Positions 7,801 to 35,900 of a DNA stretch of 64,000 nt are shown here, in pieces. The position numbers were made by a program, and so were the translations under genes. The notes under the pieces are model-generated. The model was given only the letters and a program-made list of their open reading frames with translations, searched no databases and had not been told where the DNA came from. Numbering within the stretch: the stretch's first letter is position 1; each line of letters opens with the position of its first letter. The DNA lies in NCBI RefSeq assembly GCF_964194025.1, contig NC_134478.1, forward strand, positions 5,332,001 through 5,396,000, given 5' to 3'. The DNA is from Convolutriloba macropyga (Eukaryota).

Positions 7801-10800
7801 TAAAGGTTCCATGGTCTCTCAAACCTGGAAAATAAATTTGATTCCCCCTCTATTACAACCCCACTATTACTCTCACAATGGTTCAACCCTTAAGAAGGCA
7901 TTAAAAAGTTTCGACAAATTTGCCTTGAACTTTTGATTGCTAATGAGCAATGCAAATAGCATCGTTTCATAAAAATTTGAAAAATCTTTGTAGGAATAAG
8001 ATGTAGTTTTTGGTTGAGCTGACTTTTTTAAATTAATGGAATATTTTTATTCGAACCTGAATTGAAATGGGAGTCAGGAGATTGAACAGCCGTTTGAACA
8101 ATCCCCCAAAAATTGAAATGGTTGCTGCAAAGACTTTTCCAATTTTTCCGCTCTCTCGAAGAAAAAATTGGGTATAAAATGTTCACAATTTTCTCATTAA
8201 TTGCTTTTACCCGCTTTTGAAATCCGCTACTATGTAATAAAATTATAAATACTACATAGTATTATCAGGTTTGAAATATATTAATATAAGATTTTTAAAA
8301 TGGCCAAGACAGCATAAAAGAAACTCATTAGGTACCACATTTAACATACAAAAATCTGATAACAAAAAAATGAAAAAATATTGGGTACCTAATTTTAGGG
8401 ATTTTCGGTTATCTCAGTTGAAGATTTGAAGTTCAGTATACAATGTCAGAAAATGTTTTATATGTATAGCCAGAAGTCAATATCCATTTTTTTTGCAACA
8501 AGTAAATTAAAATTATAACCATCCGGTTAAATATACCTGAAAGAAAAAATATTTCAAACCATTCAAACAAATAATATAATAAACATCAACAAATTTCTTA
8601 AAGAATCACATTATAAAATTTTTGGCATTTCCTAACTTGCAAGCTGCGTTTTTAAAAAAGTTGACTCAGCAGAAGTCACATAGAAATTCTGGCTTAATAT
8701 CTCTAACCGCTGGGCAGTTCCAGCCCCAGAAGTTATCCGTGACTTCAAACAGACTAACGTAAACTATACTTATGAACCTCTCAGTTGTCGGTCTATAAAT
8801 AGTTGGCTGAGGTCAATTTTTGGATCATATCCTTTTGTGTCCCCACCCGCCAGCTTAATGGGTGCATATAATTTGCAACCCCCCCCCCCCCCGACACACG
8901 TGCAATATTTTTTATTTTTACAAAAGGATTTACTATGAAATGGCATGTGCTCTGTAACTGGGGGTGCATAACGCGTACTGAGGAGCGGGGGGGGGGGTGC
9001 AAAGAGGGAGAAGACCCACTTGTCTACGCTACAGATTACTGTTATGATTTTGTGCTTTGTGCTTCAGACGTGATCTACAGCAGCTGTGCCCCTGAGAACG
9101 GAGTAGTGTCCTTAGGTCTAGTCATACTCCCAATAAACATACAACACATGCAATACACAGTAGCAAAGGCAACCACTGCACAGGTAATTAGAAAATCAAC
9201 GACCCTATATTAAGTAAGCACATGCGAAACGATTAGATTTTTTGAACTAATGTGCAATTTAGATTCCGTTTAGAGGATTTTCAAACTTACCGGATTTGAT
9301 TCTCCTGGCCGAGGTGTCAACGCTGAAAAACGCAAAAATATATAAGGTTGGCGGTGAATGCGATGAATTTGTGTAAGATTTGCGATTGAGGCGTTGAAAA
9401 AAATTATCGCTGCTTCTTAGAGCAGATCATTTACAATTTTACGTTTCTAAGCGTAGATCTCGCATAATTTTGGGTTTCAGTTATCGGTGATCCTACAAAA
9501 TTTTTTGTTGCTAAACGTAGATCTTACATGATTTCGTGTTAAATTTAGCATCGATCTTACATGAGGTTTTTGTTTCATATCTTAGACTTTGCCCGATTTT
9601 GCGTTGATTTTAGCGTTGATCTTGCGTCAATTTGAGATTAAAAGCTTAGATCTTATATAACTTTTCGCTGGATCTTCCATAACTTTACGTTTCTATTCGA
9701 AGATCTTACATAATTTGGTGTTTCTCAGTAGAAATTTTATATAAATTCAATGCTTAAATTTAGGCTAAACTTTTGCGTTGATCTCAAACAAAATAATTAA
9801 TGTTGATCTAAAAAGTTTTTAAATTTATGTTAGGATTCAATCACATGAAAAATTTTTGAAGTTGCTTGCATATGAAAGAAGTTCGCTTATCATACGTAAA
9901 ATTGGACATTTTCACAAATGACATATTTAAAAAAAAGAGAATTTTCATTGGGTTAGTGGGTTCATCAAATTGATCCAAACCTAATATGGGAAATCCCAAT
10001 GAATATACTGTCTCAATCAAAAAATGTTTTGGTGTAGCCTGATCACGAGAAAGGTTGGTTTTTCTACGTAATTTTGAACAGTTTGCACAATTATGTAAGA
10101 TCAGCACTAAATTTAACACAAAATTAAGTAAACTATACGCTTATGAATATAAAAATTTATAGCATCAACAAAAAATCCAAGGCAAAATTGCTTATGATCT
10201 ACGCTTAGAAATTATATGAATTCAACGCTAACCTAAACAAAAAATTAGATAAAATCTTCGTCTAATCTATCTAGGTCAAAATTTTTCTCAAAATTCAGCA
10301 TGCAATCGAAAACGCTAAGCCTGAAAATTGAGAACCAATAATTCTTTACCTGAAAGGAAAAGGGTTGATCTTCGTTTCAGTTGACGAACGGACTGTTTTC
10401 AATCCACTGGTGGAGTGACTTGTGGGGCATTGAGGCACTTTCTGCCTATCTCGCGTTCGGCAGTTTGGAGTCCACTCTCTCTAAATCATCATCATCATCA
10501 TCGCCACTTAAATCAACATCTGCAATGGGTTCCGCGGTTCCTTCATCTTTTCGTGCGCGCAGTTCGGCTACAGACAAAGATGTCCACGCCATACAAAGCA
10601 AGGTTAGATGAAGTGAAAGTTAGTTTCGGGTCTTTCTCATTATAGCCCCATCCCCACGAAAATATAACCCCCATTATGGCAAGTTTACCATGATTGCGGG
10701 GGGTAGGGGGTGGGGGGGGGGGGGGGGTAGGAGGGGGCGTTTCCAGTCCGGGATTTTCTTTTCGCCGAAAACCCGGCTGGGCTCTCGAAGCGAGTCTGAT

Positions 10801-13800: not shown

Positions 13801-16800
13801 TGTACCTTATTAGCTATGAAAAGACCGGGGGCCGAATTGTGAAAAGACTATAGTTGGCCATGTTTAGGTATAAAAAGACCTTGGAAAGGTATAAAAAAGA
13901 CTCATGAAAAGACAGTCGTCGCTCATTTTTAAACCTGAGTGTTTGTTGCATATAAGTCAGTCAAAATTTCAATTTGTGTTTTTTGTTTTGTTTTCTGCCG
14001 TGCGGCCATAGGCTTCACTCTGCAAAGGTATCTATTTTTTGGGGCATAATTTTTTACTTCTGTTTCAAAATACTTCTGTTTCAAAATTACTTGTATTCTC
14101 GACCATGCAATTAAGGTAAAGACCCCCTCAAATTTTTTTGTCTCTCCATATGGCCCACCTTTCAACGTGGACAAACAACAGACACCCACATTTCTGCCTT
14201 TCAGAAAATGGGCCTCGCAGCTCTGATCCACGACAGCGTAGAATCAGGTATGGGATTATGTCTAAGCGTGTTCCACGAGATCTCTCAGAGAAGTCCCATT
14301 GACAAACAGAAACAGGGCACAGATAGAGGTCAAAGTGACATCAGGTGTGACCTTGACTACAAAAATGGACAATCGCCAATCAGACTGAAGTCACACAGAA
14401 TTGCGAGAGAGTTGAGTCCTCAAAGACAGCACAGCAGAGCTATAAAGGTTTGATTTAATTAAAAATTTATCTAGGATACCCTTTTCTATCCAAGTAAAGC
14501 GAAACTTGATAGCCTTGCTAAGAAATATATTACAACATGGGTAATCTTGCCCGGATCTTGCTATGTTACATGGCAAGAAATTATCAAGATTTGCTTGAAC
14601 TCGTCAAGATTTTTTGCAAAGACATCAAGAGTTAAAATTTTGGAAAGGTAAACAAGAAAGATTAACCATGACGTGTCAAATGATACCAATTTGTACAGCT
14701 TAAATTCCACTAGCAAACAAAAATTAAAACGTATTAAGTTATGGTACTGATCACCATTTATGAACAATGTTTGAAAATTTAACACGCGTTAGTTTCGAAA
14801 TTTAAAAATCTGTTTAGCGGCTACCATTGTCCATGAACAATTTGCTCACATACAATGGTAGCTAATAAAAAAATGTTAGTTTTTACTTTTCGAAGCTAAC
14901 TCGTGTTAAATTTTGTGACATTAAAATCCTGATCAGCTCTGCTATATTTGGAATTTAAATTTATTTATCTTGTTTTCCAATGCTGTATTGAGTTCTGAGC
15001 CTCCTATAAAGCTGCACAAAAAAACAATCCGTGAAAAAGAGCTCAATAGTTGCTTCTCAAAGGCTTAAAACGGAAATTTTGTTTCCTGTAAATTGAACAT
15101 AAACAAAAAGTGTAATTTCAGGGTGCGACCGTGTTTGTGGGCATTGATTACGCCAGTCCCTCTTTGCTCATTGAAGCCATGAAGCACTTTCAATTTGAAG
15201 CCAACATTGTCAATATCAAACAATACCTCGTTTACATTCAGATGGTTAGTAATTATAACTAACATTTGTTCAGGTAGCAGGACAAAATACCCAATACCAA
15301 TATACCCAATGTGGAAGTATACCGAAAATATACCCATTAATTTATCCTAATATCGAAATTACTAGAACTATTATTGTTCCGACCCTCTTGAGGGGGGAGG
15401 AACTATATACTCAAATGGGTTTTTTTTGTTCCGTGAATTTTCGCCTATCGATATATTCATCGTAGAGAGTTGAGACTGGTATCATTAGAAAGCTCGTCCA
15501 GCGTAGAATATGGAATTAAAAAGATTTTTTAAAAGTTAAAGAATTATCGAGGTTTAAACTTATGAGAAAAGTAGAGTGAATTCACGTTGTTTTTATTCAC
15601 TTTTTCCGGAATTTTCGCCTAAATTTTCGTCAATTTTGCTAAAATTAAAAAAAAATTTTGAGAATAGTGTCGTTAACTGTATTTTTAAAGACAAACAAGC
15701 ATTGTTGGTTGTTTTGATTTAATTTTTTGGAAAAAAATTCTGGATAAATATTACCAAAATTCAGCCTTTTTCATCAAAAAACAGCACGAAATAAGCTACT
15801 TTAGTCCACTTTGATTAAATTTGCCTGCAGTACAGCCCCAAACAATACTCATACAATCTTTGTAGACTCAGAAGGGGGCTATTCCTACTTCGGCGTCCGT
15901 TGAGGGTGCTCTGTAATTAAAACTTCGCCGTTTTTTGATACCTTTACTGGTTGGTTTTCAGAAATGCAGAATTTATTTTTGAGTTTTCAACGAACAAATT
16001 ATCTATATCTACAACATTCGAAAAATCAATTGTTCCTAACGGACCTAACGGACAAAGAGCATTAGCAGGGCTAGTTCTGGGCCAATCTTGGACTGTTACA
16101 ATCCAAAAAGAAGTCGGATTGCAATCAGTCGGTCTTTTTTTTTTTAAAAAAAAAACGTCTTTTTTAAATAAAAATGAACAGAACATATCAAATCAAAGCG
16201 CAGGAGTGGTAGGTCTATTTGGTTTTCTAAAGAGCTCCAAGCTAATGCATTCAAATTTTTACTTGAAAGTTGATGGTCATTTCGAACTTTAAAAATAATT
16301 GATTTTCAAATAAATAATGGCTTAATAAACTTTTCCTCTATTTTTTTTCTTAATTTGTTCAACTTCTAGCTTAGTGTCAGCAAAGAAAGAATTTTTCTTC
16401 ATTCTACTGAATTGAAGTTTAGTCTCGATTGTGGTCCTAAGCCTTAAGTTATTCTTTTCTGGCTTTGATACTACTAGATTTCAGTTTTTTGTTTTAATAT
16501 ACTTGCCAATTTTTCACGTTTTCTAGTTTTGTCACCTTATCACATTATTGACAGTTCTCATATCACATTATAAGCGTTCAAAATATATCATAATTGCACT
16601 TATTAAAATCCTGAACAATATAGATTACCGTTTTGACAGCACCGACAGCTCTTTCTTGAAGAAGTTAATTGAAGTTTTGTCTTTAACTGTCATTTTTACT
16701 TTGTCGTTTGGGTCGTATGAAATTTTCTGTAAATGGATAGGTTTCATCGGTTTTTCATGGACAAATTGATGAGCAGATCTTTTGATATTAGTACGTAGCT

Positions 16801-19800
16801 GATGGCTTCCATGACTTTGAAAAAATTGTTTAACAAAACTAAAAAAAAACTTCGCAATTTTGTTCTTTTTAAATTTTTTTTTGTTACCTGATCTTGTTAG
16901 TTAAATACAGGTCAAATATGACATTATGGGTGATAGGGGAAGGTGTCAGAGGGGATTGATGTCCCAAAAACTATTTTTTTTGTATTCGTTATGACCTTAC
17001 TGGCTTCGACACCGGTTTTTCCCAAAAAAAAGTAAATTAATTTGGTTTTTGTCATACTTGACGTTGTTTTTGTACACGCAAGAAAAAATCTGGATATTTG
17101 CAGGTCTCATGGCTTCCTGTGGATGAATAAGTGACCCTATTTAAAATTTTTTTGTAATTAATGTCTTTCATGACTTTGGATGTAATTTTTCTTTGGAAAA
17201 AAAATCAAAACTATTACATACTTTTACGTTTCGCTTTTTTGTCAACTTGTTACCTAGTCTTACTAATGAACGGCCATATACTACTTTGTCGCCATATACT
17301 ACTTTGTGGCCATATATTACTACAGTTCTTAATGCCCTTCTATAGTAGGAGTGGTAATCATAAACCTTTGGGATATTTTTTTTGGTTTCTAATGTTTTTT
17401 ATTAATTTGAATTTAATTGTTTAAAAAAAGCGAATTTTTTAGCTTTTTTGTTTTTGTTCTTTTTTGTCTAATTGTTACCAAAACTTTTTATAGATTGGTC
17501 CCATACATTTTCTGGTGATTCATAAGTTATTTTGTTCAGTTTTAGCTTTATCTGATGGTATGTTAACTTTGTTATTAAATTTCTTTTTTTCAAAACGGAC
17601 ATAAATTTTTTGATGTAATTAATGTTTGTTGTTGTTGTTGTTTGATTTTGCTGTTCAACTTGACTCGCTTTCTTAATATTGGTATATCACAGCTATCAAT
17701 TGCATCAATTTTTGCTCCTCTGAGTTATTTGCTTTGGAGGCTATCTTATCGTTCATACACAATTTTTTTTGAAAAATACTTGTGCTTTTTTGAGTTTTTT
17801 GGGATTCCCAAAAAAATAATTTTTGTGTTTTTCTATCTGTTCCTCATTTGGTAGACAATTAAGCCAAAATTGTGGATGGGCGGGGTCGGAACCTTATGTG
17901 CCATCGCACATTACCGAGCCGCCTTGTTTAGCATAATTTTTAGCGGGTGCAGTTGGCCAAGCCTCGCGGGTCATTGCCGTGCCTCAGTTGCCCGTGGAAT
18001 TTGATATGAAACTATCACAACCGAACATCGTATCACTTCTCCTAAATTATTAATATGCATACATTATAAAGCGAACACAATAACAATTTCCAATGCTTAA
18101 ATCAGAATATACCGACAATAAAGGAAAAAACAGGGTGCGTATTAAAATTCCTGCAGTATTAAAATGCAGCCTAGTAAATGTGCATAATGTCTCGACACCT
18201 ATAATATGTGAAATTCTTCACAATGTTCTTAGAATATCGAGCTTTAAAATTAAATTAGTGAAGGAAAGCAAAGTTCGTTCAAGAGTTTGGATCTTAAAAA
18301 TTGAGTCTTTTCTTAGCGAAGGTTTAAATAACCGGGAAAATTTATTTCGTCATGTACATAATAAATTGTGTATTAAAACTATAAGCCCAGACCAATGCGA
18401 CAGTATTGCAGACTTGAAAGAGTCCTTGTTTTCTATGGAATTTAGTTTCTGACCAAATGAAAAGGTCAAACGACAGGAGACGTTAAAAATTTTTTATATG
18501 TAAAAGAAACAACGTCAGAATTACTTCATGAGAAATGAATAATCTTTGTTTTGTCAGAGTTCAAAGCAAGCTTTTTTCGAATTTTTCTGCGTTGACAAAA
18601 CTTTTCTGATATTGGAGTTGAAGCAACCTTTTCCCTATCGCAACAAAGTACATGTATCTTTGAAAATCCTAATTACTTCTGTTAGCGCAATGCTTCTAAA
18701 AAAATTGAGGTCGAAGAGACAATTAGAGGCCTTAAACATTTCCAAGAAAGAATTACAAAACCGTGATTAATCATATCATATTAAGAAAAATACATTTCGT
18801 TAAAATATTCTTTTCTGGCTTCAAAATGATAGATTTGAAAATATTTCTTGGTTCCACAGAATACCAGTAAAATTCTGATCTAGAAATATAATTTCGTTAA
18901 AATGTTTATTTCCGGCTTCGAAATGATAGATTTGAAAATATTTCTTGGTTCCACTGAATACCAGTAAAATTCAGATGGTTTTCATGAAACACGTCTTGCA
19001 AACAGAATTATTTAATCTTAAAGCAGTTCAAAATATTAATTTCGTAGTTTAAAAGAATTTTTTGCAGTAGAACTCTTCACCGATCTACAAGATTGCTTCA
19101 ATGAAAACCAGGTAAAGTTTGATCTGCTGATTCTAGTTTCAGTGTAAAATTCTTTTTGGATTTATTTGCGACGCAATTCAGGGATTATTCCCTATAAATC
19201 TCAGTTACAGAATAAAATGGCTTTCAATATTCCGCTGAATTGAACCGAAAATGCTTCTTTGAACGTTCCAAGTGCAATTCTTTTTTTTAAAAAAAGAAAC
19301 ATGCCGATGGCAGTCCGTAAAAACATTGTAGTTAACGAGTTTTGATGAAAATTTGTCCGATGTTTTGTCTGTCTTTAGATCACCATTTCCATTTTCTTTT
19401 TTGGAAACGTCGCAAAATAGAGACAACGCACGCTTTTCTGGAAACAACCATACTGGAATTAATAATGCGAGCAGACATTTTTAAATTTTTTTCAATTGGG
19501 TATTATCGTTTTTCTTTAAAAAAGCGCTGATACTTGTTTCACTTTCAGTTGTTTCTTTTTTTGTTTTTACAAATGGTTTTCAAAGTGAAAAACAAAAAAT
19601 AATATTTGGCCTAGCATTTGATATTGTTTTCTCTGCTGGAGCCTAAAAACTGGATCTTAAATTGTTACTGTACAATAAGTCAACTGCCAACATTTCTTAC
19701 AAAATCTTGCAATTTTAGCTTTTTTCTGCAATATTATTGTAATGTTAACTTTAGTTTTTGACCGGGGTTTATAACTATTCTGTTTGTGATGCAGAAACTG

Positions 19801-20833
19801 CGCGATATCAGCAACTTCGACCTGAATGCCTACATGGTTCCCTGGATATATTACCCAGCCTTTCCAGTTCTCAAGCTCTCTTTCGACCCTGCCCAAAGTC
19901 AACTGAAACTCAGCCAGCACGCCGAGAACGACAACCGCGGCGTGAACTTGCCCAAATTGTCACCCGACGGAAGTTTCCTGTCCTCTAACGGTGAATTGAA
20001 AAGCTTTTCGTGGACTTTCAAGGCTTCCTTGTATTTTGGGGATGGGGTGCAGGCTAATCACTGGGTCGACCAAATGTGGAAAGGTAATTTGGACCCCTCG
20101 TTATTTTTTTTTCAAAACCCCCCTTGATTAGTGGGGTAGGTGTAATTTAGCGGGCGCTGCATATTAACACATCACATGCTTTATAATGAATTTTTAAAAT
20201 CAATAATTTAGACCGAAAAGATAGGATTTCTACAAAACAAACGAACGTTTTTTGATTGAATAAAAGGAAGGCAAGAGATTTTGTTGAATTTTATAACAAA
20301 TAATAAAAATCTGGTAAAATTTAATTGATCACTAAATGCGCTTAGTCAACAGATGCACTAATGTTTCATTTGTACGTTATTCTAAATATTACAGATGAGA
20401 TGTAAATTTTTTGCAAAACGTTGAGTTTTTTTACAAGATTCTTCAAAAATGTTGAGAAACCTTGCAAAGCCATCAAAGGTTTCACAGCGCTTTTTCGATA
20501 TAAATGAGCCCAAATTGTAACGCTTGCAGAACAATATCTGGGTATTCGAGTGATCTTTCATTCGATCGCATGAGAAAACTTTTTGGCTATTTTTTAAAGA
20601 GTTTTTAAAGACTACAACTGGGTACTTTTTAGACATGGAAACTTTTAGTTCAGCATTTCTGTTATATAATTATTGCATATAGAAACAGGACAACTAAGTT
20701 GATGCTTACAAATCCGGTATCAACGATTGAAAATTTTCAGCCGATTTCGAAATCTCTACTATAAAAAAATTTTGTCACGATTTACCAATTAGAGCTTTTT
20801 GAAGAAAATATTAACCAACTCAGTATTATTTAT

Positions 20834-20914
<81 letters not shown>

Positions 20915-23900
20915 ATAGATATCTTTTTACTGGCATTCTACCAATAAATTTAGTCAAATTCCTTCAAAAAGTTAATAAGGTTAAGTAACATTAATATATT
21001 TCGACCCGGAGACAAAAACTGCAGATTGAGAAATAGTAGGTTGGAAACTTTTTCAAATAAAAAACTTCATTGTTTTTTTGGGATTTTGGCGTTCTTCTCT
21101 CTGAAATCTTTCTATCATTAATTATCAATAATTTTTATTTTACGTTCAATTTTTCCCTTTTGGCAGACTCTTGAGTGTTTTTTCAAAATTTAAGATGACA
21201 GCAAATGCATAGTTGCTTTTATTACTTTACCTATAACGGGTTCTTAATTTTTGTTCCGTCCCGCCAATTTGTCAGGGGTCTCTTTTTTATCGATTTTTCA
21301 ATCGCAGATTTTAACAATCAGAGATCTCTTCGCGTTGCATTGGTTGCTGTTTTCTAATTATTTTAAATATTTTCTCCGCTCTTGTTTTTTTTATTTTTAT
21401 ATATTGACTGGGATGAAATCAACGTTAGAATTTTGAGATGCTCCATTTACGTGCCAATTAGTCGCAACGAACATATCATATATATTACATGAAAAACTCA
21501 TGGCTTTTATGGCTTCAACACCGTTTTTGTTTGCGAAACATTGTCTCCGTGGTTATTTTTTGTCACGATTTAACCTTACTAACTGCAGGTCCTTCCGGTT
21601 TCCTGAGGAGTTACAAATTAATCTATCTAGTATTTTGTTAATGAAAATTTCGTGTTTTTTAAGCCTCTTTAATTTTCTGTTTATTTTTCAAAACAAAGCA
21701 AAGCAACGGACTTTTGAGCTCTGTGCCCCTTTTATGTTATTTGTGAGGTCGTATAGCTAAGTCTCAAAAAAGAGCTCACATCTTCTTTTAAACGTGTATG
21801 TAATGGTTGTTGGCTCTAATAGTTTTTGGTAAAAAGTTTTGTTTTTCAAATATTTGCCCATTTATTAATTTCTCTTTTGTTGTCTTGTCATTTTATCATT
21901 AAGATCGGAAATGATCTTAATTGCATTGAGAAAAGTGCTGCTAAACGTATTTTTTGTTTTTAGAGAATAGATTATGGTTTTAAAGGCTATGGCAAGGTTT
22001 TCTCTTAAAATACAATTGAATTTTTGATTTTTTCTCTTTTTAGCGTTTTTTGTAGTCGTTAGTATTGTAGATAATGTAAACCCAATGGCCTTCTATGGAG
22101 GTGTAAATCAACCTAACGGTTAAGAACTAATGGTTTATATGACTTTGAGTTTATATGTTTTCATAAAAATCAAGCGTTTTTAAACTTTGCGCTTTGTCCA
22201 CTTGTCTGTTACTTAGTGTCATCAAAGACAAGTTCCCTTTTTTCCAGAGGAGTACAAGTTACTTTCCTTAGCTTAGGTTTTTTCAGTCTCTAATTTGTCT
22301 TTGTTATTAAGTTCATCCTTCAGAAAAATTGATATTGAATTTTTGTCGTAATTAATGTTTGTTGTTGTGATTTGATTTCGTTTTTAGTCTTGTCTTGTAG
22401 TCTTAAAGTTATTTTTACGACTCGAAGAGGAGTATTGGAGAAGTCCATTTTTTAATCAATTTTATTGGAGTGATTTTTGAAGCGGGAAATGAAACGCGTG
22501 AAAAAATTTGGAGTGATTTTGGCGCTGAATAAAAGTGAAGAGCGGAGCGAAAAGAGAGTGGTTTTTGTTCATACCGCTGTTTTTGAGAGAGCGAAAAATT
22601 GATGTGTTCAAAAATTTTCTCTAAGCGAGCGAAAGTTTTTTGTTCACGTGCGGCATTTTAAAGCAGTTTTTTTTCATTTGTTTTCGTTAAGAGGTTTGGT
22701 TATGATTTTGTTATAAGTTTAGGCTGGTTTTGGTAGTGTTTTTTTTAAGGTTTCTGGAAATTAATATGAATTTTACGATAATTCGTTGGTTTTTAATGTA
22801 TTTTCCTGATTTTCGGGCAAATTTTTGCATTTTTTTGACAATTATTCTGTTTTACTTCTTAATTTTTTGCAGTTTTTCGTTTTTTTTTTCTGTTTTTAGC
22901 TAAGTTTCTTTGCCTATTATGACTTGTCTATTGTTTTGCGAGCATCTGGATACCCTATTGGCTGAAGGGAATTTTTCTTTGGATTTATATGTTTTTTGAA
23001 ATATTAAAAAAAATTAGTAACTTTTTCCAGTTTTTCAATGAAAGTTGTTTTTAAGAGCTTTTTTCAAATAATTTAGCCTGAAGTATTTTTCAAAATTCAC
23101 TTAAGTGGTTTTTGTAAGTACTAGTTGGTTTGATGAAGTTGTTTTGGCAGAGATAGTTTTTTTCGGGATCTCAATATATAACAAAATTTTATCAGATTTT
23201 TTATCATATTTTAACAGATCTGATTTTATTGTTTTTACTTTTTTGTTTCATGACTTTGTTTCAAGATAATCATAAATTAGTGAGGGCACGTTTTGTTTGA
23301 TGAGTAGTTGGATGGCGTTTAAATGGATTTTCACTTCGAGTCGTTTTCTGAATTCTTCCGGCTATGTTTTTAAATTCATACGCCATTTGTTTTAGTTCGC
23401 CATTTTTTCATACGCCATTTTTTTAAAATTCATACGCCATTTGAGATAGAACATTTCCAAAAAAATAGGTAAATTTTTGCAAATATTCTATCTCTTCCTC
23501 TTTTGGAAGACAATTAAATCAAAAATGTAGATGAGCGGGGTCGGAGCATTATGTGAGAAGGCGCACTACCGAACCTCCTTGTGCCATAACTTTACCCCCC
23601 CCCCCCCCCAAAGCTCGTGCTATCTGTTCTTACATAGTTACGCGCTATGCAAAAACTCAACATTTTAAGGGGGTTCATGGAAAATAACAGTCACCCTGGG
23701 GGGGGGGGGTCTATTCAGAACTGAGTATCTATTCGAGAAACCTAATAGATCCTGAGTTTTTTGGAGTGACAAGTTGATTTTCAGAACATAATCAATCTCT
23801 GCATGTTTTAAATTGTTTAACAGAAATCAACTCTGTCAATCTGCTCTTTGAGTCTGACTTCATTCTGGTGTTGATGTCGGGTGGCTCCATACCAAGAGGC

Positions 23901-26900
23901 ACACCAACTGTGACGTCATTAGTCGAACCCGCCAGTTTCCCAACCCAAATTAAAGGGGTATCTACCCCATTTGAGTTCAAAACTGCAAACATTGGCTGGT
24001 TCCTGCCTCTGTACGACCAGAAGTTGTTTGAAAATGTCAAAAAGCAACTTATCAATAAGTTCACGGTTAGTGGAAATTCTGGCTCATATGTTGACGAAAC
24101 ACTAGAAAAATAAATAAATTACGTCACAAATAGTACCTATGTCAAAAAAGGGACTAGCGATGTGCATTCGTGTCTAATGCTCCCATCCGCCGAGTGAAAA
24201 TAAAATTCCAAAAGATAAAACTTGTTTGTCCCAGAAGCGTATCCTGAAATGTACATTGCTCATAGTTGTGGACCTTCATAATGAAAGGTTTTCTATCGTA
24301 CGCTAAAATTATTTTTTTCTCCAAAAAAAAACTTGCAGCTGAGTTGTAAAACATTTGGAGATAACATATCAGTTTTGCCTATAATTACAGTTCTTCATCA
24401 TTTTCCGGCCTTCAAGTTCTTAAAAAAGTTATTATAAAACTTGGAGCCAAATCATAACTAAACATACCCGGTCGAAATGTCAGCACCGTTTAAGCTCATT
24501 ATTTTGTAAGAAAGGTGGTAAAAGGGCACAAATTAAGTAAGAATTGCGCTAAAAATTTCACGAATTCCACTCAAAATCCTTGCACAGGCGAAAATGCATT
24601 GAAACTATGTAAGTGCTCTCCAATTTCAGTGCATTTCTGAAATCATTACAGTGCTTTTCAACTCCTTTGAGCACAGATTTCTGAGTTTCCTACAAATTAA
24701 TTTGAATTGAATGCCCTGAAAATATGTAAAAATTATGCTCGCCTTTCATCACGTTTTTTACAAAACTGTTTATTATCATAGATTCAAATTAAATGCAAGG
24801 AGTTTCGGAAAGCAAAGGGGCAGTGGATTAATTGATGGCAAAGCAACCACAGAACAAGTTTCCATGCGCTGTCAACGCGAAATTCCGTGGTCTTGATGGC
24901 ATTTCTTTCACAGTTTCATTGCAATAGAGCGCATTAGTATGTAAAATTTTTGCGCTAACATTAAAAAAAAATCAGCGCATATCAACACTTTTCTTACATA
25001 ATTTTGCGAAAGTTTGACAAACTGGTTACATTTTATTATAGGTGAATGTGAATGTTGTACAGCAAAACTGTCAGCATAAAGATAGCGCGAAAAAAAATGA
25101 TTTTTGAAGTGAGGATTGATCAAAACCAATTAATATAAAAAAATAATGTGAATAATTACAAATGAAAAACTGCAAGTTTTTAAAATTGATTCGATAATGC
25201 CATTGTTTGATAGCCGGGTTGTTAAAATTTGACAAGCAAATTTAAGAAGTAACCTTTTAGAACTTTTCTTCTTCAAAGATTTTTTAATTCAGAGAAGTTT
25301 TCTAAACGATTGCAGTACAACGAAACATTTTACCGTACATAACGAGCGTCTACGGGTACCCAAAAGAGTACTTACAAAGAAACTGGCGATTTCCATTCAA
25401 TGTAGAAAGCGCTTAAATTTTGTTAAAGTTGTCTTTCAGATCAATTACAGGCCTTAAACTGAAAAACAGGAGAAAATAAATGTGAAATAGTAGTTACGTT
25501 TGGCTGTAAGGGCATTTTACAAAATTTTATTCCTTCTAATCTTTCTGCCGCTCACCTTTACGATTTAAAGTTTTAAAAATACTAAAGAGGAACTATACTG
25601 CTAAAAATCTGCCACACAATCCCTTGCGGAACAAGCTTCCGTCAAACATGTTTTGCGCTGGAAAGCAGTTTTCCTTTTTCAACTTCTTGTCAGAATTGCA
25701 AAACACTTTTTGCCTATAATTTGAAGAGAGTTTCACAACCTGGTTGAAATTTTATATAAGTGAATGTGACTGTCCTACAATAAAACTGTCTGCATAAACT
25801 TAGCGCGAAAAAGATTGATTTTTGAATCATTTTTTCAAAGATTTTGAAACGCTAATACTAATTGCAATAAAATTCCTATCAATATTATCTAAATAAAATA
25901 GAAAGAACTAGATTTATACTAAAAATGTGAAGACCAATGAGACGACCAATTGGCAAAATTAAGCTCTCATTTGGACCAATATTATCACATTTTTTGGCAG
26001 TAAAATTATTAGCAGCCTTTTTCAACACAAAATTGGTGAACTACAATTAAGGTTTTATTCGTAATACTGAAGCTGAAGCAAAATGGATGAAAAATGATAG
26101 AAAATAGTTATTGGATGTATAAAAGGTCGTCACACAAAAGTACACCAAAAATGTACAATAAAACTGCAGAGCATAAAAGCGCTTAAAGCTCTCAATTTCG
26201 TCAACACAAATTTCAAAAATTGTTAATTCAAATTTTTGGCTGCAGTTTTTATACGAAAAATCAAAACGCTCAAACTACCGGAAATTATTCTTTATTATGG
26301 ATTAATCAAATTTTCTAAAGATTTCTCAACGATCGTTGCTACTCTTCCAAGTCTCCTGATGAAATAGTAATTGACCAAATACATTGCAAGAACTATTTTA
26401 TACAAAATAAGTTTTCATATAAAACTAAAATTATTTTATATGTCAGCAATCTGATAATTTAAAATATTTAGACCATTTAGCATTTTGTTGCCTAAATTCT
26501 CTAACTGGTATTTGAAAATTCTGATGCAATAGTTTGGGCTTATTACAGACATGTGTAAAACTCCTAAAACCACATATATTTGAAGTTTAGGAGCAATTTT
26601 AAAAAAATTCCAATTAGTCTCAAAGAAAGATGAAAGTTTTTCAAAAATCGTCGTCTATTTAATTTTATGAAGATCCTATTCAGAACCCAAATTCTCTTAT
26701 GATCCACCGTCTGATTTTATGCTAATCTACTATTTGGTTTTTGAATGCTCAATGAGTAATTCGGGGGTTTATTACTCGTCATAGTGGTTAAAGGAAAATA
26801 TATGGACTAGCCAAATTTCAGTGAAAAAATACCATGCAGCAGGAAACATCCCCATCCATACGAATTGGAGCTAGAAAAAGTCTGCAACTTCGCAACATTT

Positions 26901-29900
26901 GTATACTTTGTTCTATCTTCCGGTTTTTCACAAGAATACCGTTAGTTTTTTCGGTTGTCTGCTGAAGCTGGATTGATCAAAACTTTCTGAGAATTGACTA
27001 AACTTAGAACTGATTTCAACCATGAGCTCCCCAGCAAGCATACTTTGACTCATTAGCATAGACTGAAAAAAATTGTTTGATCAAAAATGACAAATTAAAA
27101 AAAATAATAAATTGTTTACGGAAAAAATAAGAAAAACTAATTAAAATAAAAAAGAATGTGAATAGTCACAATTAAAAAAGTGCAATTTTTACGAAATTAA
27201 TTGGATAAAGACATTAATTGCTAGCGGCTTGTTAAAAATTGACGAGCAAACTTAAGAAGTAAACTTTTAGACCTTTTCTTTTTCAAAGATTTCTTTTAGT
27301 CCGAAAAGTTTTCTAAACGAGTGCAGTACAACGCAACATTTTTCCGTACATAACGAGCGTCTGCGGGTACCGAAAAGAGTTTTTACAAAAAAATTGGTTG
27401 GCGTTTTCCGGTGCCGATTTCCGTTCGATGCTGAAGTCTCCTATTTTTTGGAGCCGTTCCCTCAAATCAATTAAAAACCTTAAAATGCAAAATAGTAGAA
27501 AATAAATGTGAAAAGTAGTTACGTTTGGCTGTAAGGGCATTTCACAAAATTTAACTCTTCCTATTCCTGCCGCTCCTTTTTATGTTTTTATCTTTTTAAG
27601 AATACTAAATTGAGGGACTATACTGCTACTAATCTGCCGCTCATTTCCTTGCGGAAAGCGCTTCCGTCAAACATGTTTTGAGCTGGAAAGCAGTTTTCGT
27701 ATTTCACCTTCCAGTCTAAAAGTGCAACACTCTGACTGGGATTTTGAAATAGGGCACCACAAATTAATTTACCGCAAGATGAATTATTGTTTACCAGATT
27801 ATTTCTCCAAATAACTCACGTAGCATTAATTATTTCCCATTGTAAGTTTTTCTATGTTTTTATAAACTTGAGCTGATATTTACTCTGATTTTTTCTCGAT
27901 CATATTTATAAATATTTCAGTAAAAAAACACAAAATTAACTACAAAAAATTGCCATAATTTTCGTCAATTATTTTTGAGAAGAAATAAAGTTGATAAAAC
28001 GTTTTGCGTTGTGCAAAACAGTGAAAATTTGTCAAACAGTAGAAAAATGAAATTAAAAGACAAAGAGAAATTAAAAAAGTATGAAAAATAGCATAGCAAT
28101 TGTAAATTTCAAAGCAGTACCTAGTCTCCCTGCATCAATTTGTTTCACCAATTCTAAGATTCATGAAATTTTATTGAGTGCTCTTCCTTAATGTCTATTT
28201 GTTCAATAAAGTGTTCTACTGTCCATACTTGAAAATATGTTTCAGAAAATTCCAGAAGTGGAGCGATTTTCTCTCATCCGAGGTTACTTCACTCTCACAA
28301 AGTAAGTAGTCAATATCATACACATCAAATTTTTATAAATATTTCTGTATATTTATAACTGTTTCCTGGGGTTACAATTGAAAAAAGAGATGTACAATTT
28401 TATTTTTAAAAATAATTTTTACATGTGGCACAAGCGATGACTATATTAGGAGTCAGTTACAGAAACTTGCCTTGTTTCAAGTGCCTCTTGTAATGGATTC
28501 ACAAAATCTGATCATGTTTTTGCAAAAAAGAATACTAAAATTGAATGAGTTATGCATCAATATGAAAACTGCAAGTCATTCTAAAAGTTAATAGGTGAAG
28601 ATTGCAAAGTAGCTTTGATTTTACAAGAACTGCAAGGTTGTGGCAATATTTGAATTATCTTGAAATTTCTCAGTTCTGTATTCAAAAACTGTTTAAGACC
28701 TTGCAAATGAAATGCTTTTTTTCAATAACTGGATGACCAAATGGAACGATCCATACTTTTACATGGAAAATTATCTATAAAATTTTGGGTCTATTCTGTT
28801 TTGCCCCCCCCCCCCCCCCAGCTTAATTGGCTGATATTTTTACGCCCCCCAGGCGTGCGTGCTATTTTTTTACACAGTAATGTGCTATATAACAACATAT
28901 AGTTTGTAACGGAGGGCGTAAAAAACACTGGGGGGGGGGGGGGGGACAGAACAGATCCAAAATTTTATTTAAAATCTTTTTTTGTTTTCAGAAACAGTAT
29001 CTCGCCTGCCTCTAGCTTGCTTGATTTGATACAGTATGCTGGAAATGAGACTTCGACTGAGATCATGATCCTACTTGATCAGATCACTCGATTCTTCCTA
29101 GAAAGATACGAAATGAGACATCTCTACTTCCTCCATGTTTGTACTTATGATTTATATTTTCAATTGCTCCTTTTACATAGAAAAATTATGCTGCTGAATA
29201 GAAAATTATCTAATTTTTGATGAGATCATCAATTGGTCATTTGACTGATAAGATTGCATGAAATACCGTTGCCTGAAGATTTTCTTAGATTTTTATTCTC
29301 TTGTATTTATACTCGTACTGTTTCGCAGCATTTAAAAATTTGATTTTTTTTTTCAAATTGAAAATCTTGAATTTAATTTACAGTTAAAAAGTTATAACCG
29401 GTTAACAGTAGCACATAAATTGTTTTTATGCTTTTGTTACAGGAGTTCTTTGGTGACATTTGGAGTTCTATCTACGATGGAGAATGTGCCTCAACCATTA
29501 TAGACATTGACCAGTAAGAACTTATTAATTCAATATCATATATTAAAAATCATATCAGTTGTGCTCGGGAAATAAAAGAGAGTATTAGACCTCTGTGAAC
29601 ACTTGGATTTTAATCTTGCAAGATACATAAACGGAATTTTGTACAAGTGAAAAATTCTCGAAAAGAGATCTAAAAAAAGAATTTGGTAAATTTTCTGGTA
29701 AATTGTATTACATTTCTTGACCAGAGTTCTTGTTAAAGATTAGGGTACGTTTTTGGTACCTTTTCGACAAAAAATTTGTAGTTTGTGGTATTCTGCAAGA
29801 TTTTGGATAGTTTTGAATTGGGTTTTTTAGATCTGATTGTGTGGAGGCAACGTTACGGAATGCGTGCTACTTTGAGAATGAGAAGTGTAGGTCGCAGGCA

Positions 29901-32900
29901 TACTCTCTTTTGGACAGAATCAGTCAACAGGCCAAGTACAGTCCAAGCAACAAGTCATTTATAAGGTACATTGATTAGTCATCTCTTTTAATTAGTCTCT
30001 GATCTTTTCTGTTTGTGCCCCCACCCCAACTTAGTGGACGCCCCCACATGCGCGTGCCATGTTTTTACATAATGATTTACTATGTAAAGGCACGTGATCT
30101 GTAACTGGGGAACATAAAGTACTGGGGGGAACGGAAAAGTTACATAATCTCAATTAAATTTTTTGGATATCTTTACGTTTGTGACCCCCCCCCCCCCCCT
30201 CCAAGTACTTTATGCCCCCCCCCCCGTTATAGAGCACGTGCCTTTACGTAGTAAATAATCATGTAAAAATATGGCACGTGCTCTATAACGGGGGGGCATA
30301 AAGTACTTGGAGGGGGGTCACAAACGTAAAGATATGCAAAAAATTTAATTGAGATTATGAAACTTTTCCGTCCCCCCCCAGTACTTTATGTTCCCCCAGT
30401 TACAGAGCACGCGCCAATACATAGTAAATCATCTGGAAAAAATATGGCTCGTTCGTCTGGGGTGGGGGGAGGGTGCAAATAATATGCACCCACTAAGCTG
30501 GGGGACACAAACGGAAAAGATAACATTTTTTTTCGTCAATTTTTTTAATTCTGCGTGAGAAAATTTACTTCCAGTCAAAATTGTAAGCTACTCATTAAGA
30601 TTGGTGCCCCACAAAGCTGAAAAAAGGATCTATTCTGTTTTGCCCCCCCCCCCCCGCCTAGTGGGCTTATATCTTTTGTGCCCCCCAGGCGCACGTACTG
30701 TTTTTTTTAAAATAATAGCGTGCTATATAACATATAATTTGTAACTGGGGGCGTAAGAATACTGGGGGGAAGAAAAAAATGGATCCGAAAAAAGCTTAAA
30801 TGATCTTATTTTTAGCACATGGAGGATAAAAAAAGAGAATTTATTGTTACTGTTATTATTTTATGGCAGTATATCCAACTTTTAAGCAGTTCATAAGCAA
30901 AATTACAGGACGAAAAGGGTGACAAACTAAAATCCTCTCTGTTTGAACTCATAAAGTTCTGTGATACACCTATGTGCATGGACAAAAAAACGCAAATCCC
31001 ACTTGACAAAAAAATGTTGTTTCTTAACTTTACGTTATTGATAAAACTTTGAGTAGGACTCGGAAATTGGGTAATTAATCACCATTAGCGCGGGTTTGAA
31101 AAACGATAAGGTGCTCTTAAACAGGTATCAATTACTGAAAGGTTCCCCAAAAACGGTAGTTATATAACGTCACTGTTTTTCGCGATTAAGAAGTTAACTG
31201 TGGGCAGAATTGAGAGAGAAAGAGCAAATTTTTCTTACTTGTTTTGCTGAATAAGTTAAATATTTTCCACAGTTTTAAGTCACCTCATAACTTTATTGCT
31301 CAAATTTAATGAATAATCTTGCTTGAGAATCAATTCAAATAATTAATTGTTTTTGTGTGTCGTGATGTGGATTGCTTCAAAAATGTTAATCCTTTCTTAA
31401 TCCACAAGTAGGTTTGCCAGTAACTGTGTCCGGAGAAAACAGTCCCAGACAAACAGTCCCAGACAAACAGTCCACAGTCCTATAAATGCAGACAGGATAG
31501 TCCCGAATAATTATCGAAACAATTGTAAATAGAATTAATCTACAAACAACTAACAAACATAATCTAACACATGCGCTTCTGAGTGTTTTGTTTTTAATTG
31601 ATTTGAATTAGAGGTGAACCAAAATCTTGTTAAAAATACATTATTTGGCAAAAACTATGTTGTAATCAGCTTAATACTTGTTCAATGATGTACAATCATA
31701 TGAATAACTTAAGCAGTTTCTTTGTTAATTGATTTGCAAATGTTTGACTCTATATTTAGTTCGGACTATTTTGTCTCGGACCGTTTTGTCTGTTTTCTTT
31801 GGACTTTTTTGTCTCGGACTATTTTGTCTGGGAATGTTTTGTCTTGGAATGTTTTGCTATTTGGGACTGTTTTGACCGGGACTGTTTTGTCTGGTACTGT
31901 TTTGTCTGTTCAACGCCAGGAAGATTTCATTAGTTAATCACAAATTAGGTTTTGTTGCATTTCGGTCTAATTGGTGTCGGTCTGGGTGACTATCACAGTT
32001 AGTAATCGTGGATAACAATGACGTTGTGGTCATGTCTGACATTTTTGTCCGCTCTGGCTCAAAAACACGCATAATAGATAATTGCAACAGACATTTCCAA
32101 ACTTGAAGCGAATTTGAACTAAACTTGCTTGCAGTGAAAAATGTCCGCGCCCGCTTTTAACTCTAATCTTAAAACGTGGTCGTGAAGAAGGGTGAAAAAC
32201 TCGAGTGATTTAACCGAGAACATTAAACTTTAGGAAAATAAACAACGTTAAGATGATCTTTAGAACCTCTTTGATTTTGAAATGAGAATTGATTACGAAT
32301 TTGATTCCACGGAAAACACTGTTGGTGCCCTCAATATTACTTAAATATTTTTCATTTTTAATAATAAAATTCAATATTTTGTATGTTTTCAGAGATTCAA
32401 ATTGCATGCGAATGTCTACTATAGACCACAGGGGATAAATTTTTGCGCACGTTTTAGCTGGTTGGGTGAATTCCTTCGTCAACGAGGCGCAGAAGTGATT
32501 GTGGCATCCTCCTCTTGTGACTCAATCAGATGGTCAGAAATACACAAACTCTTCTTGGGCGCACTCAAATTAGACCCGGCAACCCCAGAACAAAACCCTA
32601 GAATCTACGGTTCGTCGTCTCGGGTGTCTTCGTTCTCGTCAGTGACGGACGTTGAGGAAGCTCGGAGGGTTCTTCTAACCGGACTGGCAAGGAACTCGAA
32701 ATCATTGCATACGTTAGTTTAATAATAGTTGAGGACGTGAACTGATTTTCGGCAACTGTTTGTTTTCCCGGCGGACTAACAAAACCTGCCATCAATGTTT
32801 TTGATGTTTCCCTACTCGGAAAAAAATATCATGCAACATCTTACAAGATTCTGGCAGAATCTTGCAAGACGATACTTCGTCTGACAAAATTTCTTCCAAA

Positions 32901-35900
32901 TTCTTGCACGATCTTACAAGATACTTTTTTCTTACGAGAATCTCACAGGATACAATTTTTCTTTTAAGAATCGTACAAGATACACTTTTTTAATTTCAAA
33001 ATTAGTTTTCGACCTCCAGCGCCTACACTTATGACCTATAAAAAATGTATGACCAACCTATCCATAAAAAGAATTTGATGGAAAATAATTTTTTTCTTGA
33101 AGGATCATAATGCTGAATCATCACATTCTTATTTCTTTAATTTAAGGTGATAAAAAACAAAGTTTTGGCTAATTTTTCCTGTTAAAAAAGACATTAATCT
33201 TGCAGAAAACCGACTCCACCTAATTTTCTTCTTCTCAGAGAAGCGTCCACTGACTCGAAGTCTTCTCTGAAGAAAGGGTCTTTGAAGAATGTTCCTTGAA
33301 AATAATTTCCTCGCAGAAATTAGGTGTCCTAGCAACAAAATAACTTGATTGTACCCACGAAAAAGTCTGCTATTTCACTTGGTTTTCAACAACAGTTGTG
33401 TTTTTGGTTGGTTAGTTTCTTCGTATTTCAGCTTTTTTCAGGTGGTTTATTTATTTGCAAGAATCTTACAAGATAAACTTTTTCTTGCAAGATATTACAA
33501 GATTAATTTTTGGCCTCAACTAAAGCTTACATAGGCATCGCCTGGTCCGCCCCCTGGAGTTCTTTCGCATCGTCTGTACAAAAATAGGCATAAATTTTTT
33601 CACACTCTGCTGAAAAAATAATTGTTTCACAGGGAAACCAAAAACTTTTTGCTAATTTTTGGATGGTTTTTTGTTTACTTCTTCTGTATGAATGTAGAGA
33701 ATGTTCGGCCTTTCAAGTAACGTAGCTGTTTTTGATCTACAAACTGAGCATTTACATATATTCTACATCTGTTAAAATAACGAACCGGGTTGCCCTCATA
33801 ATTCAAAAAGTTACATAATTACATCTTCATATTACGGTGTCTATCAACAATTGTTGCCATAAACTTTATAAAAGTTTCACAGAATGCAATGAATCGTTTT
33901 AAAAAAATGAAGAGCGCCCAAACAATTTGCGAAACATATTCTTCAAAATAATAGTGGAGAAAAATGGCCGCTGATAATAATTTAAAACAATAATGTAAAA
34001 AAATATTAATAATTGACCGCTGTGATTTGGTAGACAAAAGTATATTTTCTTAATAAATTTTTATTATCAACTATAGTTGATAATAAAAATTTATTCAGAA
34101 TATATACTTTGGCCTACCAATTCACAGCGGTCAATTATTAAAAACTTTTTATCTTATTATTGTTTTAAATTATTATTAGCTGCCAATTTTTTTTCCACTA
34201 TTAGTATGAATCATATGTTTCGCAAATTGTTCGGGCACTTTTCAAGTTTTTTTAAAAAATGATTTTCTAGAACTTGCATTCTATTAAAGTTTAATAAAGT
34301 TTATGGCGACAATTTTTCATAGACAAAATAATATGAAGTTGTAATTATGTTGTAACTTTTTGACGCCACCAATTTCGCATAAATCTCGAAAGCATGTGTG
34401 TTTGCTTTGATATCATGAAACTGATTCTGTGCTCTGCACTACAGAAATTGATATCTTTGCTTATTTCAAGGTTACTATCAACTATTGACCAGCCTGTTGA
34501 AGACAAACTGTCTGCGGGTACTGAGGCCTCGGTTCCCGCTCAGGGAGGTGGTGGAGGCGATGGGGCTCAGAGTAAGAGTCGGTTCTATTACAAGACAGAA
34601 GAGCTGCTTGTGCTATTGACGGAGTCAGTGTATTATTCCGATGGCTGGATCGGAATGGCTAACCATTTAACCCAATCAAACGGTGCTAATATCAACCCGT
34701 AAGTCTTCACTTTCAACTATATTCCGGTAAAAAACTATTTTTTCGAAAGAAATGTTTCAGATTACTCTAAACTTTAATCAATTATTTGATAAAATCCTCG
34801 TCTTTTTATGGCTCTCTTTGATACAACATACAGCATTTATGAAAGAAAGTATCATATATTTATAATAAAAATTGAAAAATTGATGCTTTTTCACTCACTG
34901 TTTTCCACTGGCTGTGTTTTTCTATACAAAGGAAAGTATAATTTTCAAAAACAAAAATTCCTTTACAATTTTCTGCAAGCTATTTTTTATCGGAAAAATG
35001 CAGACATCAGCAACTCTCAGTGATTAAAAAACTTAAAACCGTGCTAGAATATTGAAAATGAATTTATATCAGTTTCCTATCTCACCAAATACAATTTTGC
35101 ACAATCTTTTCATTGAAAGTCAATTTCAGAATAAATGGAAGACTCAAAAAGACTAAATTTGTAAAATCCTGCAAAATTCATACTCATCGCACAGTTAAAC
35201 CTATTAAATGTCATTTAAATAATCTCATTCCTTTAGTAAAAAAATTATTCTAGCCAGGCCTTGGAAAATGACGCGCTGTATGAACATTGAGATTTTTTTT
35301 GCAAAAGTTTTATTTTGTGTCTTGAATACTTTTCTCCGTTATTGCTCTATCAACTGTACTGTTTCGACCAAATTTTTTGAAGTACAATATTAGGTGATTA
35401 TTTATTCCAGACAAGACTTATTTTGATGACTATGTGTGACTTGATATTGCAGATTGAAAAAAGAAAATTAAGGACGTTCAATCAAAAGCTAAAACCATTT
35501 CTAATTGCCTGCCTCCTAGTTTTTTTTTGCAATCTTGCATGAGTATGCCACATTTGGTTGTTCCTAGCCACTCAGGAATTGATGCATATCTCTCAAAAAA
35601 CATATTATGAATTCAAAAGTAGCATTGATTGGTTTTCAAAACTGATTGTATAATTCAAAATGAAGAGATTTCATTTTCGATTTACCCAGAACAAAATCTA
35701 GCATGTCACATAGTGGATCTCTTCTGTCTCCTCACCCAGTGTCCTTTTTTGCTCTCTAATTACAATTAATTCATGATTTATATAGCACGTTAGTATATAA
35801 ATTTCCGTTTCAAAAACTTACCGGATTCTCATCAAAATCAATTTATTAACAAGGCCATCTAAAAACTGGTTGCTGCCAATTAGTAATTTTTTTGCAGCAA

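Follow-up and report, generated by a model that had tools for sequence, protein, structure and literature searches.

A maintained M1 aminopeptidase-type gene of Convolutriloba macropyga with a predicted loss of the catalytic apparatus

A 64-kb stretch of Convolutriloba macropyga DNA (contig NC_134478.1, positions 5,332,001 to 5,396,000; hereinafter designated the window) carries a large + strand gene with homology to the M1 metallopeptidases of the aminopeptidase N (APN)/ERAP type. We consider it likely that this single-copy, multi-exon M1 gene has kept the four-domain architecture of its family while losing the catalytic apparatus, is maintained, and acts by binding. That the gene is maintained and not a pseudogene is supported by three independent lines of evidence: a very distant relative that shares the loss, sequence coverage confined to exons, and a skewed pattern of polymorphism. 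The loss of the active site is old, and the gene has since been kept open, spliced, transcribed and under purifying selection.

The former HEXXH site lies in exon 4 and reads VAKATTAQ, with the first zinc-binding His replaced by Lys (9166-9168), the general-base Glu by Ala (9169-9171) and the second His by Ala (9178-9180). The third zinc-ligand Glu is kept (codon 10432-10434), exactly 18 residues past the position of the second His. The GXMEN motif is absent from its site, where NGVVS pairs gap-free with DAMEN in BLASTP. Spliced exons 1-9 match ordinary M1 proteins from the N-domain through the zinc helix (BLASTP, E 5e-20 to 6e-21). Against one of these, P0144 (E 5e-20), the GAMEN region aligns gap-free with KLDLIAIPSFGMDAMENWGLV and the dead zinc helix (...WWSDLWGIE) aligns gap-free with VAHELAHQ...WWSDLWLNE; hmmalign to a 41-protein M1 profile places the HEXXH helix in the same register. 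A preliminary description of this DNA had given the coordinates and peptides of the exons at 9068-9183 and 10381-10602, and direct reading of the DNA confirms them to the codon. Its gap-free M1 alignment, the replacement of both zinc His (by K and A) and of the general base (by A) at 9166-9180, the third Glu at 10432 with exact X18 spacing, and the change of GAMENWGL to NGVVSLGL at 9097-9120 are likewise borne out.

The N-domain and the catalytic Tyr site are affected as well. The Glu of the N-domain motif TQFEP (avTqfePsdAR in the profile) is Phe in exon 2 according to the hidden Markov model (HMM) alignment. This N-domain Glu or Gln of M1 enzymes (ERAP1 Glu183, PepN Glu121) holds the substrate amino group. 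The catalytic Tyr site (Y.KGA) reads SRAIK/GA across an exon junction (14433-14447 and 15122 onward), with Ala 14439-14441 at the Tyr position. The register here comes from the KGA anchor and from the distance to the next block that the HMM aligns, which departs from M1 by no more than 2 residues, the site itself not being HMM-aligned, so the catalytic Tyr, which the preliminary description had also counted as lost, has very probably been replaced by Ala, a weaker call than the other losses. Judged from sequence, the predicted protein has lost both zinc His, the general-base Glu, the GAMEN Glu and the N-domain anchoring Glu, and its sole survivor is the third zinc-ligand Glu. Because the anchors of the substrate N-terminus, the zinc ligands, the base and the Tyr are gone, canonical exopeptidase chemistry is excluded.

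The dead site recurs in a distant relative. Of 1.84 billion representative proteins, the one that exon 2 matches best (phmmer) is P0001, an open reading frame (ORF) on an 85-kb ENA metagenome contig, and its locus (hereinafter designated L013) holds collinear counterparts of exons 2-5 with identical boundaries and phases:

Exon 2 counterpart, L013 10036-10324: same phase, 46% identity; Tyr at the position of the TQFEP Glu
Exon 3 counterpart, L013 11095-11260: starts VVALNESVN, ends KI plus 1 nt, same phase
Exon 4 counterpart, L013 11356-11471: same length and phase; EGFIGAGI at the GAMEN site and VAMAATQQ at the HEXXH site, in ...SNCAPKEGFIGAGIVILPQ...VAMAATQQ
Exon 5 counterpart, L013 12061-12273: reads WWSDLWALEGIS / LLNRILSINWWSDLWALEGIS, including WWSDLWALEG, followed by a Ser/Pro (S/P)-rich stretch

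Over 259 aligned codons, the window gene and L013 are 37% identical, with a non-synonymous divergence (dN) of 0.64, a synonymous divergence (dS) of ~2.3, which is saturated, and a ratio of ~0.28-0.35. Because L013 shares the dead motifs at saturated dS, the loss predates the divergence of the two very distant species, both of which have kept the reading frame. A 16-residue N-domain/groove stretch containing FPCFDEP is identical in the two proteins, and both keep S.CAP..G....G[LI]VILP at the former GAMEN site and the WWSDLW..E helix. An S/P-rich insertion of ~60 residues in the catalytic domain, probably disordered, is also common to both.

Conservation of the third zinc-ligand Glu and of the WWSDLW helix in both species, together with the fully conserved FPCFDEP groove element, could be taken to mean that the protein is still an enzyme, using the retained Glu and other residues for non-canonical hydrolysis or another activity. 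We regard this as very improbable. The residues at the three dead zinc-site positions differ between the window protein and L013 (K/M, A/A and A/Q), which argues against a conserved replacement chemistry there, and L013 has Asn where the window protein has a His adjoining WW. Neither GAMEN, nor the N-domain Glu, nor the Tyr has been retained.

Beyond P0001, the phmmer matches to exon 2 are ordinary or multi-unit APNs with at most 39% identity. Word-index searches with the exon 4 ORF, the exon 2 ORF and P0001 return only the query's own ORF or nothing, and a metagenome scan with the two-species alignment returns ordinary M1 genes with 29-46% identity to exon 2. At L013, neither exon 1 nor the trypsin-like neighbour of the window gene (see below) was found in the 10 kb upstream, and the 8 kb downstream, full of a repeat family, yielded no exons 6-7. 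Positions 12500-20700, intron or flank of the relative, are filled by a repeated ORF family whose FLAALQHCCFE and STLLLRK peptides recur in more than one reading frame. Because the gene calls on its contig read TGA as sense, P0001 continues past a stop codon.

Transcription is indicated by run X5, which comes from the same organism (159 M letters, recorded as 'DNA?'). It covers 9068-9183 and 10378-10600, precisely these intervals, at a depth of 69, and ~14205-14447 at ~85-90; its depths of ~20 and 90 in the two bins at exon 6 fit an exon start at 14205, and unique intron bins have zero depth. A piece of the same depth (69.2) covers exon 4 as covers exon 5, and a 430-nt X5 contig places letters 92-314 (223) on 10378-10600 (exon 5), its remaining 116 and 91 letters lying elsewhere. 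This contig reads as joining exons 4, 5 and a further exon, and we infer from the coverage that the gene is transcribed and spliced. Because a DNA run at 0.13-fold genome coverage could not yield an exon-only pattern, X5 appears transcriptome-like. A contig of another run, X6 (organism B), matches 10298-10470, where the intron ends and exon 5 begins, differing at 5 of 173 nt and implying that a closely related taxon carries the same exon 5; the other X6 matches in the window are mainly repeats, with a few low-depth intron pieces.

Polymorphism points in the same direction as the comparison with L013. Of the nine substitutions listed in exons 4-6 for the X1, X3 and X5 haplotypes against the window, seven leave the amino acid unchanged and two alter it (V to A at 9107 and S to P at 10543), where neutrality would predict 75-77% non-synonymous changes (P ~0.001 for the listed 7:2). 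The sole exon indel listed is in frame, a 3-nt deletion of a single TCA from the Ser run; intron indels in the list measure 1 nt. The preliminary description had argued for a maintained pseudoenzyme and not a pseudogene, and the dead motifs of L013, the exon coverage of X5 and the 7:2 ratio among listed variants uphold that proposal.

The gene model from which these comparisons are drawn comprises 16 exons on the + strand (4598-36988, 3174 nt), with every intron GT-AG, all exon phases compatible and the stop codon at 36986-36988. Of the earlier estimate of about 1044 codons in 16 exons without a stop, the exon number and the absence of an internal stop stand; the codon count is 1057, with at least one 5' exon still missing. 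The window has ~33% G+C and belongs to a 1.18-Gb assembly, and the introns are long (up to 4.5 kb) and repeat-rich.

Exon 1, 4598..4836, + strand: M1 N-terminal beta-domain; phase 0 start; PF17900 E 1e-4 on the ORF; acceptor ttttccag, donor gtttgt
Exon 2, 5484..5775, + strand: PF17900 E 2.6e-10, 41.1 bits against a cut-off of 25.8; Phe in place of the TQFEP Glu
Exon 3, 6602..6815, + strand: VIFFNEST...IAGKL plus 1 nt, running into the KLD anchor before the former GAMEN site; splice sites and phase
Exon 4, 9068..9183, + strand: former GAMEN site (NGVVSLGL, 9097-9120) and former HEXXH site (VAKATTAQ)
Exon 5, 10381..10602, + strand: WWSDLW helix with the retained third zinc-ligand Glu (10432-10434), then a Ser-rich low-complexity insertion
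Exon 6, 14205..14447, + strand: polar insertion ending QHSRAIK; acceptor tttcag, donor gtttga, phase 0 to 0
Exon 7, 15122..15244, + strand: completes the thermolysin-like domain; splice sites and phase; distance to HMM position 459 differs from M1 by at most 2 residues
Exon 8, 19795..20083, + strand: start of domain III; HMM positions 459-500, E 2.4e-5 in the spliced protein
Exon 9, 23785..24065, + strand: end of domain III and start of domain IV, GYYRVNYD-equivalent block; acceptor ttttcag, donor gttagt; inside a 32-bit HMM domain
Exon 10, 28246..28301, + strand: HMM positions 571-595; splice sites tttcag and gtaagt
Exon 11, 28992..29136, + strand: phase fits exon 10; acceptor gttttcag
Exon 12, 29443..29513, + strand: splice sites ttacag and gtaaga; phase fits
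Exon 13, 29831..29965, + strand: HMM positions 677-711
Exon 14, 32458..32712, + strand: the one phase-compatible candidate in 29966-34400 whose coding score is positive; without HMM support of its own
Exon 15, 34471..34698, + strand: phase-compatible, donor gtaagt; support weaker than for exons 1-13
Exon 16, 36724..36988, + strand: phase-compatible acceptor; stop 36986-36988; judged by eye alone, similar to the C terminus of M1 domain IV

Homology to M1 proteins and canonical splice sites fixed the positions of exons 1-8; exon 9 was located through the GYYRVNYD-like block, its strong splice sites and its compatibility in phase with exon 8. Weak collinear HMM matches, strong signals of the tttcag / gtaagt type and phase compatibility placed exons 10-16. 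An ab initio coding score trained on paralogues recovered exons 1-9 and was too weak for the C-terminal exons, which were then placed through phase, splice signals and gain in HMM score. The M1 profile used throughout was our own, built from 41 single-unit M1 proteins taken from the phmmer search with exon 2, because Pfam did not significantly recognise the catalytic domain: PF01433, the thermolysin-like catalytic domain, reaches E 0.13 on exon 5 alone, below the gathering score, with BLASTP alignments to M1 proteins running through the domain. The spliced 16-exon protein matches this profile with E 6.7e-51.

The N-terminal beta-domain (PF17900) with its FPCFDEP motif is present, scoring 41.1 bits on exon 2 and 116 bits on the spliced protein, where exon 1 forms part of the 116-bit HMM domain. 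None of the pieces of exons 9-13 is significant by itself; splicing unites them in one HMM domain of 166 residues (positions 547-712 of our profile, E 1.6e-12) without net indel, which corresponds to the ERAP1_C-like helical domain IV. Because this single domain without net indel appears only after splicing, it provides an independent check of the junctions between exons 9 and 13. Pfam on single exons gives no match to domain IV. The domain check that had been suggested for the gene therefore succeeds for PF17900 and, through our own profile, for domain IV; for PF01433 the Pfam score on exon 5 alone stays below the gathering score, and for domain IV Pfam gives no match on single exons.

The sequence around the central exons has its own peculiarities. 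Homopolymer runs (C13, G10 and G-rich) lie near exon 4 and downstream of exon 5 (8880-8895, 8985-8998 and 10700-10760), and DNA-run reads seem cut at 10696-10740, beside a G-rich stretch. Intron repeats at 11050-12250 and 9250-9650 reach a summed DNA-run contig depth of 10^4 to 2.8x10^5, compared with 20-50 for unique sequence, and show many back-joints of ~40 and 57 bp together with opposite-strand joints, a pattern that indicates a satellite-like element in tandem or inverted arrangement. Also in an intron is a (GT)n-type tract (~11750-11916).

Several points weigh against the reading of a maintained, non-catalytic M1 gene. HMM, coding-potential and motif scans of the 20 kb upstream and of positions 1-4597 did not find a 5' exon with a start codon; because exon 1 starts in phase 0 at HMM position ~75-99, one or more 5' exons, which would carry the start codon and any signal peptide or membrane anchor, are missing from the model, and an ORF intact up to its start codon is unproven. 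Support for exons 14-16 consists of phase and splice signals only. Run searches found no public run labelled RNA that contains the gene; what bears on the RNA check proposed in the preliminary description is the exon-only coverage and spliced contig of X5. X5 is most likely a transcriptome whose record lacks a library type, its RNA nature being read from the coverage pattern, and its exon joints are not among the joints listed. The polymorphism count is of the variants listed and may be incomplete. The dN/dS ratio, which had also been proposed as a check, was obtained from one relative only and is a rough bound because dS is saturated. That relative is the only one found among 1.8 billion representative and 5.8 billion clustered proteins, and it covers four exons only.

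The missing start exon and RNA-labelled run, together with a catalytic domain that has drifted beyond the Pfam threshold and with the low-complexity insertions, would suit a decaying unitary pseudogene whose open frame survives by chance or after a recent inactivation. Such a history is highly unlikely here, given 1057 codons in 16 exons without a stop, the same dead site and exon phases in L013 at saturated dS, the confinement of X5 coverage to exons with a spliced contig, and the excess of synonymous over non-synonymous listed variants with an in-frame exon indel. Similarly, the long, repeat-rich introns and the unlisted X5 joints leave room for a wrong gene model, in which the real transcript takes another exon with an intact active site. 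This is the least probable of the alternatives, barely credible in view of a search of the whole 64 kb in six frames, in which the only HE..H string holds a stop codon and no GxMEN is encoded on either strand. An alternative exon supplying GAMEN or HEXXH, the outcome that would have overturned the earlier proposal, was thus looked for in the window and not found. Equal X5 depth over exons 4 and 5 and the presence of the same dead exon in L013 also speak against a wrong model.

The maintained M1-like gene is a single unit and single-copy: the next best match to exon 2 in the genome has 38% identity, and neither the window nor the 20 kb before it contains an M1 paralogue. At least 15 further M1 matches occur in the same genome (search with exon 2), among them active-looking paralogues; four fetched loci encode HExxHx18E and several encode GGMEN. 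The best full-length matches are insect multi-unit aminopeptidase-N proteins, with 33-39% identity in exon 2. On this sequence evidence, the gene is best described as a predicted APN/ERAP-lineage M1 paralogue turned non-peptidase homologue: M1 homology, loss of catalytic residues and signs of maintenance, the marks of an M1 non-peptidase homologue in the MEROPS sense, are all present.

APN-type M1 enzymes dimerise, and pseudoenzymes often regulate active relatives. The main alternative to binding of a ligand of its own is accordingly that the protein pairs with active M1 paralogues through domain IV as a regulatory partner, tuning or localising their activity. The presence of further M1 genes, some with intact sites, would provide such partners, the ERAP1_C-like domain IV is recognisably conserved, and regulation of active relatives by pseudoenzymes is echoed in PMC4242634. 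The proposal is nevertheless unlikely, since the window and the 20 kb before it are free of paralogues and even the best exon shares no more than 38% identity with any of them.

Returning to a maintained protein that acts by binding, the remaining conservation lies on the N-domain, the groove elements, the WWSDLW helix and domain IV, which suggests a binding or scaffold role. The M1-like protein would work without hydrolysis, and binding would use the conserved N-domain/groove surface, the WWSDLW helix and the new S.CAP..G....G[LI]VILP block that replaces GAMEN.

The gene has a protease-like neighbour. An ORF at 1650-2027 on the - strand, head-to-head with the M1-like gene and ~2.6 kb upstream of exon 1, encodes the start of a trypsin domain (PF00089, 21.8 bits against a cut-off of 20.6), in which the catalytic-His motif TAAHC reads TIAGC (...CGGTIIRPQWVLTIAGC...). 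A bolder version of the binding hypothesis, which we put forward tentatively and think doubtful as a whole, is that the window gene founds an old, unannotated clade of dead M1 proteins (two members in the searched libraries) whose catalytic domain was remodelled to serve a new binding function through the CAP block, the S/P-rich insertion and the conserved groove; it would be well expressed in X5, and its head-to-head arrangement with a His-less trypsin homologue would hint at a small locus in which protease folds have been co-opted.

M1 homologues without activity already form an established category (PMC10368266, PMC4242634), to which the window gene adds a member in a lineage almost absent from protein collections. 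The locus raises no new question by itself. It offers a clean, well-supported case of a peptidase fold kept after complete catalytic loss, with a usable gene model and a distant relative that shows the loss to be ancient, and its product is one to which an automatic pipeline would probably give the name "aminopeptidase N", placing it among the active proteases.

Compared with M1 metallopeptidases of the APN/ERAP type (PF17900, PF01433 and PF11838), the window protein shares the four-domain order, the FPCFDEP motif, the KLD anchor, the WW.DLW..E helix with its X18 Glu, the PV block of domain III and the ERAP1_C-like domain. It differs in having KATTA for HEXXH, NGVVS for GAMEN, Phe for the N-domain Glu and Ala for the Tyr, in the ~60 extra polar/Ser-rich residues of its catalytic domain, and in a catalytic domain that falls below the Pfam threshold. 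The TFIID subunit TAF2, which has an M1-like domain, is likewise M1-derived and non-catalytic. We consider the window protein a putative APN-lineage paralogue and not TAF2 because of its FPCFDEPA motif and ERAP1_C-like C-terminal domain.

Within family M1, a known parallel is Caenorhabditis elegans MNP-1 (matrix non-peptidase homologue 1), which lacks three of the four zinc-site residues and is needed for muscle and neuronal cell migration and for toxin defence (PMC10368266, citing Tucker & Han 2008 and Craft & Forrester 2017). The window protein differs from MNP-1 in keeping the +E ligand, in having a conserved replacement motif and an insertion of its own, and in its closest matches, which are arthropod APNs (33-39% in the best exon). 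M1 pseudoenzymes with functional evidence, such as MNP-1, are few, and the locus contributes a further lineage to them.

Partial erosion of the site is seen in insect multi-unit APNs. P0004 unit 2, P0031 unit 1 and P0033 unit 1 have a partly eroded HEXXH (SYGIAHQ, AHEMTKQ and AHQLALQ, respectively) with WW..LW kept and neighbouring units intact. These degenerate units are among the best full-length matches to exon 2, but they belong to polyproteins of 2 to 4 units and are only partly degenerate, whereas the window gene is a single unit from which every catalytic determinant has been removed. Outside family M1, Drosophila Gone early (M13) and C. elegans ACN-1 (M2) are metallopeptidase folds without zinc motifs that act independently of peptidase activity as membrane or secreted proteins (PMC4242634); they illustrate the same principle as the window protein, in other families that are not homologous to it beyond the zincin fold.

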